64,000 bases of DNA from Orbicella franksi. Taxonomy: Eukaryota. Of the stretch, positions 20,277-35,421 are shown piece by piece. The notes under the pieces were generated by a model. It was given only the letters and a program-made list of their open reading frames with translations, had not been told where the DNA came from and made no database searches. Position numbers and translations under genes: made by a program. The DNA lies in NCBI GenBank assembly GCA_964199315.1, contig OZ116700.1:22320001-22384000 (forward strand), given 5' to 3'. Each line of letters begins with the position of its first letter. The stretch's first letter is position 1.

Positions 20277-21697
20277 AGTAGTACAGGGCGCTCATAGGGA
20301 CGGTAACCAATCAGGAGCCGAGAAAGACAATAGGCTATTGTTTAGAGAACAATGAATGCCATTGTTTTCAAAATCCAAGATGGCGGAGGTTATTTTCAGC
20401 CAATCAGGAGCTTAATTAAGACCTGAGCAGCAGTGAAACCTGGAAACCAGGTCCCAGGTTTCCATAGGAAGGAGGATGAACACAGGAGTCTGTTTTGGGC
20501 GGGAAAATTGCCCACCAGACGCAAAGGCCTGGGACCAGTCTTACCATTTTCCCCTCAGAATTGTCCGATACGTCAATCGAGAATCAATCTATACATATGT
20601 AAATCAAATGTGAAACAATTGTATTTTCAAAAAAAATCCTAATTCTTTACAAGAGGGACCTGTGTCCACTCCCTTAGTGGGAGGACGCCCATAAACATTT
20701 TTTCACAATAAACGTAAATCATTAGTGTGTGCGTTGACGGTGCCTGACTTACGCAACATTACTTTGTATTTACTTGCATGTGTGAATTGGTGCTTCTTTG
20801 ATATTTTTACATATTTTTTTACGCAAATGCAACAAATGCTTATAACAGCTTAGAAACTCTGACGAGTAACGAATAATAAGCGAAGGCAGAAATATATAGG
20901 GTAAAAGGCGAGAAGAAGAAAATACAATTGAAATACTTCAAGTGGAAATGATTTGCTAATGGCAGTTTGCAATGAAATCTAAACTCCTTGACCTCGACTG
21001 TTCCGTTGAGAAAAGCATCATTCAAAAGAATCTTGAACAAAAAATAGGCATTTTGGGCGACCATTGAAGAATTAACATAATTAGTCAGAGATGGAACGTG
21101 CAATAAATCAAAAGCAAAAAGCACATGTTTAGAAACTGTATCTTAACCCTTGAGAATAACATGAGAGAAACTTCAAACTTTTCGCGCTTGAAGTAAAGAC
21201 CTAACTTCATTTACAAACACTATAAACTAATCGCTTCAAATAAAACAGACGCTCGAATAATAAGCAGTTTTCAAATAGCGACCAAAATCACTTACATCAA
21301 ACATAGTACTTTCCTCCGAAAGCGTCACACAACTCGCGATCACTCAACTCCATAACTGCCAAGACAGAAAGAAACTACAAAGAAGAGGTGTGCTGAATGT
21401 TGTCACAAGTAAAATGAACTCTCTCAAGACCGTTTGACTTATAAACGGGTATTCACAAAACAATATAATAGACAATGTGACGCGGTTAACAACCGATGAG
21501 AAGATGGGGGATAGGGGGTACGCGATATCACGTGGTTAAGAACCAAAGAGAAGATGGGAGATAGGGGGTATACACCACAGTAATGTGATTAAATTGTTAT
21601 AAACAATTGCAAAACAGAGTCTGAGTCTTTATAACGTTTCTTTATAACTCTTTAAGTCTTGACCGTCGTGTTGGGAACTACACTCGTTTCCAGTTTT
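20277..21697 (+). repeat. Left terminal inverted repeat of the Polinton
   Basis: Reverse complement of 33933-35421 apart from scattered substitutions and a few indels. Inner boundary approximate. Confidence 0.9.
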
Positions 21698-22107
21698 ACA
21701 GACTCTTGGTCCCAGGGCCCAAAACGCACAATTTTTCTCTGGTTTTGGCCATGAAGTCTTTGACTGATCCGTTCCTTATTCTTCGCAAGGTAACTTCTCC
21801 AATATTCGTTGATCCGTTCCCCGTTGTTTTTACAGTATTGTCTTCCGTAATTTCTGACGTGCTCCTTGTTCTGTTGACAATAAGCTCTCTGGCTGCTGGC
21901 GAGTCGTTCCTTGTTGTTTTCATACCATCTTTTACGACGATGTTTGAAAATCTTGACGTTCTCTGCACGATATCTTTTTTTCTGGGCCAGGATTCGCTCT
22001 CTGCTCTTTGCATAATATTTTTTATGGTAGGCCTTTTTACAGACAGCCCTCTGGTCATGCCCTAACAGTTGATTGGAGCAATTCATCTGGCATGTGTGGC
22101 GTCTCAC
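21652..22107 (-). CDS. Polinton small basic protein with repeated Y-x-x-N-K-E-R-I helical motifs (putative DNA-binding)
   Basis: 151-aa ORF: YYAKSRERI, WYENNKERL, YCQQNKEHV, YCKNNGERI, YLAKNKERI; lies downstream of the ATPase on the same strand. Confidence 0.55.
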   Translation of the reverse strand: MRRHTCQMNCSNQLLGHDQRAVCKKAYHKKYYAKSRERILAQKKRYRAENVKIFKHRRKRWYENNKERLASSQRAYCQQNKEHVRNYGRQYCKNNGERINEYWRSYLAKNKERISQRLHGQNQRKIVRFGPWDQESVKLETSVVPNTTVKT

Positions 22108-22159
22108 GAATAATGGCTAAAACCCTAGAATCACACACTCTTATAAGAGTCGCAGGGTT

Positions 22160-22714
22160 AATTTAGGTTTCAACCTCTTCTTCTACTTCCTCTTCGTCAT
22201 CATCGTCGGGGAGTAACCTCTTTTGTATTAGTCTGCTTAACAGGAATTCCGTTTTGCCACTGCCGACTCGGCCGCTTCGTCAAAATCCATGTCGTCTTCG
22301 TCAATAAAGCGTCGAAGAGTCTTCATGACTTTACGGTGTATTGCGTCGTGTTTTGATACGGTGAGTCCATTTTAGACGCTCTAAGTAAGTCCTTCGTAGC
22401 CTTCGTCTACTTACAGGTAATAGGGCATTGAAAGCAGCATTTTCGGCATAGTTTTGGGATTTTCCCTTATCCAGAAACTGCTGGACTTCTTTCGGGTAGG
22501 TTTCTTTGAGATCTTCCCCGACGTTTTGACTTAAGGGACTCCACAGAACTGGTTCATCGTCGTCCGCTTCTTCTTCCTCTTTGGAGATGCTACCATGCTC
22601 CTCTTCTTCCTGTTCCTCTTCAGGCTCGTTTTCTTCCACCTCCTCTTCCTCTTTTACGTTTTCATCATTGTTATCTTCCACGGGGCCAAAAATATCTGTT
22701 GAACGATCATCCAT
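22160..22714 (-). pseudogene. Polinton acidic-tract ORF (uncharacterised), frameshifted
   Basis: ORF 22331-22714 continues in shifted frames as DAIHRKVMKTLRRFIDEDDMDFDEAAESAVAKR...LPDDDDEEEVEEEVET*. Confidence 0.55.
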
Positions 22715-22802
22715 GATTCTCGTCGACCTTTAACCAAGACAGCGTGCTTCAAATGAGCCGAGTTGATTAAACTGATATTTAATATACCATTTTAGTCAAT
22801 TA

Positions 22803-32575: not shown

Positions 32576-32859
32576 TTTGCCTTTTGAAGAGCATTTGGCC
32601 AACACGATCTCCTTTAAATCTGACCCATAACCAAGGAGTCGATGACAAGCAAAGGAACTGCATATATGTTTGTATTTGCCAAGTCATGCCCTTACTTGCC
32701 CGCCCTCATTACTATTGTGCAAAATTCATGACAGTGACATGCAACCAAACTTGCCCAAGCAGGTCTGAGCGCGCCCTATTGTTTGCCTTACAAAGTACAC
32801 CTCCATTTGGGAACAAAATAGGAATGCGCAGAGAAATGGTCCGAAATCTGGTCCCAAAT

Positions 32860-33490
32860 GACCAATTTGGGAACAATATGTTCCATTCACAGAGAGGAAC
32901 TCGGAAGAAAAGGTCCTAAATTATCAATTTGGGAACAATATGTTCCATTTACAGATAGGAACTCGGAACAAAACAGTCCTATATTTCGTAATAAGTGGCC
33001 AATTTGGGAACAAACTGTTCCATTCACAGATGGGAATTCGGAACAAAAATATCAATTTGGGAACGGTATGTTCCATTGGCAGATGAGAATTCGGAACAAA
33101 ACAGTCCTAATTTACTAATTTGGGAACAATGTGTTCCATCAACAGATAGAAACTCGGAACAAAACAGTCCTAAATGACCAATTTGGGAACAATGTGTTCC
33201 ATCAACAGATAGGAACTCGGAACAAAACAGTCCTAAATGACCAATTTGGGAACAATGTGTTCCATCAACAGATAGCAACTCGGAACAAAACAGTCCTAAG
33301 TGACCAATTTGGGAATAATGTGTTCCATTTACAGAGGGGACCTCGGAACAAAACAGTCCTAGTTTATCAATTTCGGAACAATGTGTTCCATACACAGAAA
33401 AGAACTCGGAACAAAACAGTCCTAATTTATCAGTTTGAGAACAATATGTTCCATTTACAGTTGGGAACTCGGAACGAAATGTTCCTCTTT
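32860..33490. repeat. 63-bp tandem array, ~10 units, each with a GGAACA-N3-TGTTCC palindrome
   Basis: TGGGAAC at 33121, 33184, 33247 (period 63); 21-aa periodic ORFs confirm the period. Confidence 0.9.
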
Positions 33491-33932
33491 TACACTAGAG
33501 TGAACGTTTTGTTCCTACTATGTAAAAAATCTGGTCCTCTTATAGTCAATAGGAACACAAAAACGAGGAACAGTCGATACTTGAGGAACGTTCCTTTTGG
33601 AATATAGGAACAGCCAACAAAACTTAAAATCAGCGAAAAACGAGGCAAAGACTAAAGAAAAACTCAAAAAAGCGTAAATCAAGCTCTTAGGTGAAAAGGA
33701 AACAATCTTTAAAAACTGGTGAAGTTTGTTTCGCTCAAGGGCAGCGAAACACGCCATAATAAATTTTTGGGAAATGTAAAGCAGAAAAATAGGCAAAATG
33801 GAGGAGGAGGAGGCTGAGAAGGAAGAGGAAGAGGAGGACGAGAAAAAATAGGCAAAATAAGTATTGGGGGAGGAGTAGGAGGAGGAGGAGGAGAAAAAAG
33901 AAGCAAATTAGGCAAAGTAAGTATAGGGGAGA

Positions 33933-35421
33933 AACTGGAAACGAGTGTAGCTCCCAACACTTCGTGGAATACCGACGGTCAAGACTTAAAGAGTTAAAAT
34001 TATAATCAATTCTTTCTTTGGAGTTATTATTCAATAAACGTTATAAAGACTCAGACTCTGTTTTGCAATTGTTTATAACAATTTAATCACATTACTGTGG
34101 TGTATACCCCCTATCTCCCATCTTCTCTTTGGTTCTTAACCACGTGATATCGCGTACCCCTTATCCCCCATCTTCTCATCGGTTGTTAACCGCGTCACAT
34201 TGTCTATTATATTGTTTTGTGAATACCCGTTTATAGGTCAAACGGTCTTGAAAGAGTTCATTTTACTTGTGACAACGTTCAGCACACCTCTTCTTTGTAG
34301 TTTCTTTCTGTCTTGGCAGTTATGGAGTTGAGTGATCGCGAGTTGTGTGACGCTTTCGGAGGAAAGTACTATGTTTGATGTAAGTGATTTTGGTCGCTAT
34401 TTGAAAACTGCTTATTATTCGAGCTTCTGTTTTATTTGAAGCGATTAGTTTATAGTGTTTGTAGATGAAGTTAGGTCTTTACTTCAAGCGCGAAAAGTTT
34501 GAAGTTTCTTTCATGTTATTCTCAAGGGTTAAGATATAGCTTCTAAACATGTGCTTTTCGGTTTTAATTTATTGCACGTTCCATCTCTGACTAATTATGT
34601 TAATCCTTCAATGGTCGCCCAAAATGCCTATTTTTTGTTCAAGATTCTTTTGAATGATGCTTTTCTCAACGGAACAGTCGAGGTCAAGGAGTTTAGATTT
34701 CATTGCAAACTGCCATTAGCAAATCATTTCCACTTGAAGTATTTCAATTGTATTTTCTTCTTCTCGCCTTTTACCCTATATATTTTTGCCTTCGCTTATT
34801 ATTCGTTACTCGTCAGAGTTTCTAAGTTGTTATAAGCATTTGTTGCATTTGCGTGAAAAAATATGTAGAAATACCAAAGAAGCACCAATTCACACATGCA
34901 AGTAAATACAAAGTAATGTTGCATAAGTCAGGCACCGTCAACGCACACACTAATGATTTACGTTTATTGTGAAATAATGTTTATGGGCGTTCTCCCACTA
35001 AGGGAGTGGACACAGGTCCCTCTTGTAAAGAATTAGGATTTTTTTTGAAAATACAATTGTTTCACATTTGATTTATATATGTATAGATTGATTCTCGATT
35101 GACGTATCGGACGAGTCTGAGGGAAAAATGGTAAGACCGGTCCCAGGCGACTGGTGGGCAATTTTCCCGCCCAAAACAGACTCCTGTGTTCATCCTCCTT
35201 CCTATGGAAACCTGGGACCTGGTTTCCAGGTTTCACTGCTGCTCAGTGTGTCCGAGCCGATACCGCCATCTTGAATTCTTAATTGGGCTCCTGATTGGCT
35301 GAAAATAACCTCCGCCATCTTGGATTTGGAAAACAATAACATTCATTGTTCTCCAAACAATAGCCTATTGTCTTTCTCGGCTCCTGATTGGCTACCGTCC
35401 CTATGAGCGCCCTGTACTACT
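33933..35421 (-). repeat. Right terminal inverted repeat of the Polinton
   Basis: Mirror of the left TIR; the same short ORFs appear in both (20433+/35236-, 21124-/34551+). Confidence 0.9.

Follow-up and report, generated by a model that had tools for sequence, protein, structure and literature searches.

The 64-kb window analysed here (the whole 64,000-nucleotide stretch of Orbicella franksi contig OZ116700.1) contains, at positions 20277–35421, a segment that is bounded by long terminal inverted repeats (TIRs) of Polinton type. It encloses a packaging ATPase with two small open reading frames (ORFs), a long interspersed nuclear element (LINE), and a gene combining a zinc finger (ZnF), a tyrosine recombinase (YR) and a Myb domain. 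In the present work, we examine the nature of this segment by comparing it with related loci from other assemblies, which are referred to below by L numbers. As will be seen, the segment is very probably a nest of three unrelated mobile elements, namely a mini-Polinton backbone, a LINE and a defective copy of a YR element. The features are as follows, with the strand given where there is one (TSD, target-site duplication; aa, amino acids; RT, reverse transcriptase; MITE, miniature inverted-repeat transposable element; Ka/Ks, ratio of nonsynonymous to synonymous substitution rates).

20271–20276: left flank TACTAT, the presumed 6-bp TSD, matching the right flank at 5/6 positions; perfect in the relatives L007 and L014
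20277–21745, plus strand: left TIR of the mini-Polinton, with the terminus AGTAGTACAGGG and, in its first ~130 bp, TAACCAATCAGGAGC and ATCCAAGATGGC
21652–22107, minus strand: 151-aa basic ORF of no Pfam family, conserved in mini-Polintons (~70% aa identity, Ka/Ks ~0.4)
22331–22714, minus strand: 127-aa ORF with an acidic tract, of no Pfam family, conserved in mini-Polintons (55–64% aa identity, Ka/Ks 0.4–0.5)
22803–23597, minus strand: packaging ATPase of A32/FtsK-like type, extended at its N terminus by a C2H2 zinc finger; the core ORF, 22803–23459, is intact
23678–29011 (about), plus strand: nested LINE, with a PHD and AP-endonuclease ORF (23670–25040), an RT ORF (26899–28800) and a (TTA)n tail
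25086–26722: foldback (MITE-like) element of 1.6 kb inside the LINE, with ~470-bp inverted arms that are 98% alike
29048–29447: GAG-rich micro/minisatellite, (CTC/TCC)n on the YR strand, abutting the right-end arm of the YR element
29446–33777 (about), minus strand: YR-element copy of 4.3 kb that, like L006, has lost the helicase gene by deletion; ~85% DNA identity to copies in other coral assemblies
29449–29459, minus strand: right-end 11-bp arm TTTGGGAAACG; next come ATCC and the microsatellite
29699–30431: tandem units of ~298 bp with internal palindromes, at the position that in full copies is taken by the ~275-bp repeats downstream of the helicase gene
30858–32605, minus strand: gene for the ZnF, tyrosine recombinase and TRF-like Myb protein, with one frameshift and no internal stop; intact relatives have 571 aa
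32861–33479: 63-bp array of ~10 units, six of them with the exact palindrome TTGGGAACA-N3-TGTTCC
33766–33776, minus strand: left-end 11-bp arm, which reads CATTTCCCAAA in the window and CGTTTCCCAAA in the majority of copies, and which pairs in inverted orientation with the right-end arm
33799–33908: minisatellite, CCT-rich on the YR strand, flanking the YR element on its other side
33921–35421, minus strand: right TIR of the mini-Polinton, its inner end shortened at about 33925 relative to the left arm and to L007
35422–35427: right flank TAGTAT, the presumed TSD partner

The features that the original prediction had read from this segment are all found again. The AGTAGT termini and the TIRs of ~1.4 kb are present, the arms being 1469 and 1501 nt long and 97.2% identical over the aligned bases, in seven blocks. 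The A32-like ATPase with two small ORFs at the left, all on the minus strand, and the ZnF-YR-Myb gene with its 63-bp array at the right were likewise placed correctly. The 6-bp TSD holds in part, in that flanks of this length exist but differ at one position. Absence of pPolB, integrase, protease and capsid genes had also been stated, and agrees with our searches. In tblastn with all 46 called ORFs of the full-length coral Polintons L009 and L014, no Polinton gene except the ATPase was matched in the 64 kb. This covers the pPolB and rve ORFs of both elements, and for pPolB there was in addition no PF03175 in the 10 larger ORFs scanned. For the capsid and protease genes, the result is that the 46 ORFs, the ATPase aside, are unmatched, the capsid ORFs among them not being singled out. 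An assembly artefact as the cause of the composite was considered and set aside, the window having no N and both TIRs and both ends of the YR element being correctly oriented.

The reading as a nest is carried in the first place by the YR element, which exists independently of the window. Seventeen copies, at 13 loci in several assemblies, were found in addition to the one at hand. The full element is ~8–9 kb long, and its copies within one assembly are 99% identical, so the family must have been recently active. Its order is a 63-bp array, the YR-Myb gene, an opposed gene of 754–864 aa, a stretch of ~1.2 kb and tandem palindromic repeats of ~275 bp. In these about 8–9 kb there are only two genes of substance, with no RT and no morphogenesis genes; the morphogenesis module of Polinton-like viruses (PLVs), that is, double jelly-roll major capsid protein, penton and ATPase, is absent from the element, and the window has no capsid-gene match. 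The flanks of the 17 copies at the 13 other loci (up to 10 kb) were found to contain neither the window TIR nor the Polinton terminal motif, and 13 of the 17 also have no Polinton gene of any kind within that distance.

It is important to point out that the identity of the recombinase rests on its conserved residues and its fold, because the sequence searches see only the Myb domain. Pfam, run on the window ORF and on 30 relatives, returned this domain and no Phage_integrase, DUF3504 or GCR1_C, and sequence and profile searches of the PDB with the family gave only TRF/Myb domains, the closest being those of TRF1 and TRF2. In an alignment of 30 relatives at 32–55% identity, R308, K336, R408 and H433 are invariant and Y442 is nearly so (P0007 numbering), with the spacing of a YR. 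The AlphaFold (AF2) model of the protein has a pLDDT (predicted local distance difference test) score of 86, and its best matches in the PDB are XerA, Cre, XerH and lambda Int (E down to 3e-4, probability 1.0), while viral integrases lead the BFVD search. With this catalytic set and the two-domain YR fold of the model, the ZnF-YR-Myb protein is assigned as a tyrosine recombinase. In the window, the gene appears as a 461-aa ORF overlapping a 146-aa Myb ORF, both on the minus strand; the former has ~800 close protein relatives, mostly of 571 aa with a C-terminal Myb domain. The window copy keeps 4/5 residues of the catalytic set and 11/13 of the invariant columns that it covers.

The partner gene matches PF00519, PF01057 and PF19263, and its Walker A (GxxxSGKT) and Walker B (DE) motifs are invariant. 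Foldseek returned poxvirus D5/E5 and the SaPI5 primase-helicase, with E down to 3e-7. On these matches the gene product is classed as a D5-like superfamily 3 (SF3) helicase, a primase domain not being part of the assignment.

All copies begin with (A)CGTTTCCCAAAA and end with TTTGGGAAACGATC, and these ends are 11-bp inverted repeats. The right-end arm reads TTTGGGAAACG and the left-end arm CGTTTCCCAAA in most copies, and in all single copies the arms are located at the ends of the element. Four loci hold two YR-helicase elements each (L005:450-17400, L012:8343->21716, L020:3426-16920 and L021:918-16350). In L005, L012 and L020 the two are arranged head to tail, such that right arm, 8-bp spacer and left arm are joined, with no microsatellite between them, to TTTGGGAAACG-ATCCTCCA-CGTTTCCCAAA or a close variant. 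This 11-8-11 site has the form of a loxP/FRT-type core, with inverted arms around an 8-bp spacer, and is the predicted recombination site. The joined core recurs in L016 and L017, two metagenome contigs of a diverged family, where the spacer differs at its centre while the arms have been kept. There it is surrounded by diverged sequence (L016:116-143 and L017:1443-1470; JGI Ga0126336_10049406 and Ga0126336_10142794), and the two contigs are candidates for circles, tandems or empty target sites. In L016 there is, in addition, a weakly helicase-like stretch that shares 32% identity with P0241 over residues 7–77 of the latter.

The spacer was found to correspond to the sequence in which the element is lodged. 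TCC-type spacers are flanked by (TCC)n in L001, L004, L005, L006, L013, L021, L022 and the window, whereas L018 and L019, with a CTT-type spacer, are embedded in (CTT)n. In L020, (CCT)n is found to the left and a TCCT-type repeat to the right, and L002 and L003 are situated in unique DNA, where the match between spacer and flank is limited to ATC/TC. Such a correspondence is what is expected if a circle recombines through its spacer with a matching target. L018:8751-13640 and L019:8751-13645, from two assemblies, represent a subfamily with a 574-aa recombinase. These copies have no helicase gene and are bordered by (CTT)n at either end, and they may be orthologous to each other. We have also considered ~110 bp beyond the left end, common to the window, L004, L006 and L013, as a longer terminus or target, and rejected it, the alignment consisting of (CCT)n only.

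In the cycle that we propose, which is similar to that of Cryptons, the YR element would leave as a circle, would possibly replicate with its own helicase, and would re-enter by recombination of its spacer (ATCCTCCA or ATCTTCT-type) with a matching (TCC)n or (CTT)n microsatellite. The 63-bp arrays are candidate accessory binding sites or iterons. The six exact occurrences of TTGGGAACA-N3-TGTTCC in the array of the window compare with 0 expected by chance, and the palindrome resembles the end arms. TTTGGG, which is present in both arm and array, is a plausible predicted target of the TRF-like Myb domain. The copy in the window is itself defective, having a frameshift and having lost the helicase gene, and no further copy of any part of the element was found in the rest of the 64 kb.

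We now consider the backbone. It has the long TIRs, the 5′-AG termini and, at 5/6 positions, the 6-bp duplication of Polinton/Maverick ends. Both arms terminate in AGTAGTACAGGG, which is of the AGTAGT type, and AGTAGTA, TAACCAATCAGGAGC and ATCCAAGATGGC, located in the first ~130 bp of the window TIR, are shared with the termini of the full-length L014. The TSDs of relatives are perfect, AGTGTT in L007 and ATTTTA in L014. The packaging ATPase is of the A32/FtsK type found in Polintons, being 64% identical to that of L009/L010 and 76% to that of L014, and its match to Pox_A32 is weak (E 1.5e-4, just under the Pfam cut-off). It has more than 700 relatives, the named ones being from stony corals (Oculina, Stylophora), which makes the host a scleractinian, and the nearest relatives (82–89% identical) belong to short elements. 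One defect is seen in this gene: the zinc-finger extension is in frame up to 23597 but lacks its own start codon.

Six relatives of the backbone were examined, namely the short elements L007, L008, L011 and L015 and two full-length kinds, L009/L010 and L014. An intact example of the short kind is L007:7727-13164, a 5.4-kb element with 1646-bp TIRs that are 99.8% alike. It encodes the zinc-finger ATPase, a 171-aa ORF, ORFs of 154 and 103 aa within the TIR and a doubtful ORF of 165 aa, and has no core genes. The 154-aa ORF (11628–12092) is contained wholly in the TIR, and each element thus has two copies of it. L011, L015 and L008 resemble L007 in kind, so that the short ATPase architecture with Polinton-type ends recurs in four assemblies. 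The full-length L009/L010 and L014 have the rve integrase, pPolB and a PLA2-like gene; L014 is 17.6 kb long with TIRs of 232 bp. The small ORFs of the short family were not found in the full-length Polintons examined. With the short elements, the window is collinear only over 20276–23677 and 33929–35421.

Some further observations were made on these elements. The 151/154-aa ORF (21652–22107 in the window, L007:11628-12092) is very basic and has a reiterated Y..NKE-type motif. The region L007:9369-9876, upstream of the ATPase, is palindromic and repetitive; the 165-aa ORF there may be spurious, and its counterpart is not in the window. Beside the mini-Polinton fragment of L008, four ORFs without Pfam match (380, 298, 661 and 304 aa) lie between inverted repeats of ~500 bp (L008:12249-16871), and this may be another nested element.

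Since it has neither pPolB nor rve, the backbone does not fall under the definition of a Polinton (PMC5499653). We class it as a mini-Polinton, a non-autonomous derivative that belongs to a coral family and has retained the Polinton ends and the ATPase but not the core genes. With the coral Polinton/Maverick elements (polintoviruses) it shares the AG-type termini, long TIRs, 6-bp TSD, A32/FtsK-type ATPase and terminal motifs. It differs from them in a size of ~5 kb instead of 15–20 kb, in the lack of pPolB, rve, protease and capsid genes, in the C2H2 finger gained by the ATPase, and in two or three extra small ORFs, one of them inside the TIR. Between diverged mini-Polintons, Ka/Ks is 0.14–0.19 for the ATPase and 0.3–0.5 for the small ORFs, and the short family has thus been evolving under constraint as a family. 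The shared ends and 6-bp duplications suggest that full-length Polintons supply the rve integrase by which the mini-Polinton is integrated in trans. That the packaging ATPase has been kept under purifying selection suggests that the mini-Polinton probably also depends on the capsids of those Polintons, which would make it a satellite-like parasite of Polintons.

The LINE is the third member of the nest. Homology of the window to L008 ends at 23677, i.e. where the LINE starts, and the insertion is situated between the region upstream of the ATPase and the GAG-rich repeat.

What the data show directly comprises the anatomy of mini-Polinton, LINE and YR element, the independent copies, the ends, the joined sites, the correspondence of spacer and target, the folds of the proteins and the purifying selection acting on the ATPase. 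A number of points weigh against the reading as a nest. The junction between backbone and YR element is not clean. The right TIR stops matching the left arm and L007 directly beside the CCT-type repeat, and ~1.3 kb of L007-type backbone is absent from the window, namely the inner portion of the right TIR and the stretch upstream of the ATPase, with the ~165-aa ORF. From this it follows that either a deletion accompanied the nesting or the nesting followed a deletion. No (CCT)n tract was found in uninterrupted mini- or full-length Polintons, so that the backbone does not account for the repeats on both sides of the YR copy. The YR copies used for comparison come from other genomes, and the closest database proteins are 89–91% identical to that of the window. 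The mobilisation in trans, the packaging and the circular intermediate are proposals drawn from sequence anatomy. Finally, four of the ~14 independent YR insertion sites (window, L001, L004 and L013) are in Polinton-derived elements, next to an ATPase gene or to genes that neighbour it. This exceeds what chance would lead us to expect, and the association with Polintons may thus not be accidental.

This last point is the basis of an alternative in which the YR-helicase element would have a preference for Polinton-derived elements, either because these provide a suitable microsatellite beside the ATPase or because it lives on Polintons as a second-order parasite. It is compatible with the nested anatomy and adds a biological link to it, and we consider it possible, if rather unlikely. 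At all four sites the YR element is in (CCT)n by a Polinton-type ZnF-ATPase and/or a 108-aa ORF that has a homologue in a full-length Polinton. In L004:7188-8227 and L013:7056-8150, a diverged ZnF-A32 ATPase, 35–38% identical to that of the window, is found across the (CCT)n at ~100–300 bp from the left end of the YR element. The right flanks L001:18103-19817, L004:18379-19152 and L013:17056-18229 contain homologous ORFs of 141, 108 and 143–276 aa, and the 108-aa ORF in the right flank of these three loci resembles the 108-aa ORF of the full-length L009/L010. The YR elements of L001 and L004 are 99% identical and their flanks 83%, and for L004 and L013 the corresponding values are 91% and 75%. 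As the elements are far more alike than what surrounds them, they must have inserted independently into diverged copies of one Polinton-derived host family. A survey of coral Polintons, moreover, reported tyrosine recombinases in 52/4,862 regions, scattered and without clade pattern, and helicases with a similar distribution (PMC11131425), the pattern that is expected of secondary insertions.

On the other hand, the ~14 sites are a small sample, which was chosen through protein clusters and is not random, and at least nine other insertions are in ordinary microsatellites or in unique DNA. A (CCT)n tract is missing from intact mini-Polintons of the window family, and a host copy that has the microsatellite but is empty was not seen. 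TIRs and the Polinton terminal motif were looked for around the ATPase-bearing flanks of L004 and L013, and none was found within these loci. In L004, a 160-bp palindromic repeat is present on both sides; it looks like an unrelated MITE.

Quite improbable, in our view, is a second alternative, in which the short TIR-ATPase element would be the decayed remnant of a full Polinton after internal deletion, with no life of its own. It would fit the lack of any core gene as well as the old-looking arms (97% alike) and the two or three nested insertions of the window copy. However, the same short architecture is present in at least four assemblies, together with conserved small ORFs that full-length Polintons do not have, and L007 combines TIRs that are 99.8% alike with a perfect TSD. 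The proteins, furthermore, form clusters with tens to hundreds of members, and the Ka/Ks of about 0.15 within the short family points to purifying selection on the ATPase. 

These results also bear on two suggestions of the original prediction. The LINE had been thought to occupy the place of the missing core; the intact L007 has neither LINE nor core, and nothing of the kind has been lost under the LINE, since a core is never present in the short family. The suggestion of a satellite mobilised in trans is retained for the TIR-ATPase backbone alone and is abandoned for the composite, the YR belonging to a separate element.

Finally, it is hardly credible that the YR-Myb gene and array are a regular module of a Polinton lineage (for excision, concatemer resolution or a second integration route), which was the other suggestion made for this segment. 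The gene does lie inside the TIRs, and some PLVs use a YR with a D5-like helicase (PMC11296320, PMC5499653), but the backbone relatives have no YR (none by tblastn in L007–L011, the full-length L009/L010 included, and no called ORF of YR size or with a Myb match in L014, also full-length, and L015). Instead, the module occurs elsewhere, in the 17 copies at 13 loci, without the window TIRs and with its own ends and core site; inside the window, the DNA homology to it begins and ends at these ends, and the copy there is frameshifted and without its helicase partner, next to a right TIR that has been cut short. Occurrence of the module elsewhere with its own boundaries is the very outcome by which the original prediction was to be refuted.

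A few other features of the window can be mentioned here. The foldback element at 25086–26722 is located between the endonuclease and RT ORFs of the LINE, and holds an 87-aa ORF of no Pfam family. Positions 13927–14151 and 62368–62528 match the flanks of unrelated loci (L006:803-1031 and L001:7000-7155) at 80–82%, and are other dispersed coral repeats. The interval 43001–44000 is a local peak in G+C, 0.53 compared to about 0.40 around it.

Among known systems, Cryptons (Goodwin 2003; Kojima & Jurka 2011, PMC3212892) resemble the YR element in being YR-encoding DNA elements without RT, with a motif match between terminus and target, with no staggered-cut TSD and with increasing copy number. They are described as having no TIRs and as encoding the YR as their sole protein, sometimes accompanied by an Ulp1 protease (PMC3212892). 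In the model for their integration, a circular form recombines at a short motif (PMC3212892), which is supported by active Cryptons in Chlamydomonas, CryptonF-1_cRei (PMC9977147). The coral element, in contrast, has 11-bp inverted arms forming a lox-like core, and adds the gene for a D5-like SF3 helicase, two repeat arrays, a C2H2 finger and a TRF-like Myb domain. The two are set apart here on the basis of the published description, no Crypton reference sequence being part of the comparison.

The phage satellites of the P4 type and of the type of Staphylococcus aureus pathogenicity islands and phage-inducible chromosomal islands (SaPI/PICI) are bacterial and depend on a helper phage. Like the YR element, they are small and integrate, and they combine a YR integrase, an SF3 primase-helicase and iterated repeats. 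The similarity concerns architecture only, no helper, packaging signal or link to a capsid being known for the coral element.

Closely similar in plan is the end module of entomopoxvirus-associated PLVs (PMC11296320), in which the same two enzymes, a D5-like primase-helicase and a YR, are placed by inverted repeats; the latter have been proposed to act as recombination site and origin (PMC11296320). That module is part of a capsid-encoding virus genome, whereas the coral YR element stands alone, and the resemblance drawn here is one of architecture. Endogenous nimaviruses have a YR with a C2H2 finger, and integrate into (TAACC)n or 28S rDNA (PMC10871703). They share with the coral element both the finger-bearing recombinase and the integration specific for simple repeats. 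Nimaviruses, however, are giant viral genomes, while the coral element is small, has two genes and targets (TCC)n or (CTT)n. For the enclosure of a YR element by the TIRs of a DDE element, as envisaged for this segment from the start, there is a precedent in MarCry-1_FO, a Crypton inside a Mariner that is moved by the Mariner transposase. Several copies of it, more than 97% alike, are known, with TIRs and TA duplications (PMC3212892), whereas no second copy of the window composite was found.

In the literature searched, with Repbase and Dfam outside its scope, we found no published description of a standalone element from animals in which a YR is combined with a D5-like helicase. The novelty is in the parts and not in the composite, the parts being a variant of YR DNA transposons and a conserved ATPase-only derivative of Polintons. 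A more far-reaching view can be entertained tentatively, although we regard it as doubtful. In it, the YR-Myb and D5-like helicase element would represent an undescribed class of animal mobile elements, a self-replicating integrating episome with a lox-like site, which would be directed by its spacer into trinucleotide microsatellites with a preference for Polinton-derived DNA. In architecture, it would be the counterpart in eukaryotes of P4/PICI-type satellites, and together with the ATPase-retaining mini-Polintons it would make up a layered community of parasites that surrounds the coral Polintons.

As to what these results mean, the locus does not represent a Polinton lineage that has its own recombinase, and the claim as originally made is deflated. 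The scattered YRs and helicases of coral Polinton regions (PMC11131425) may instead be secondary insertions of one element family. The recombination site of the YR element can be read from its genomic copies, as 11-bp arms around an 8-bp spacer, with a target that varies with the spacer. To our knowledge, YR DNA elements are uncommon in eukaryotes and the sites on which they act are not well defined, and the present family therefore makes the Crypton-type model of integration testable by a census of sequences. The site also resembles recombinase target sites that are already in use as tools. The short derivatives, which keep only a packaging ATPase under selection, bear on the question of Polinton satellites, and hence on the viral behaviour of coral Polintons.

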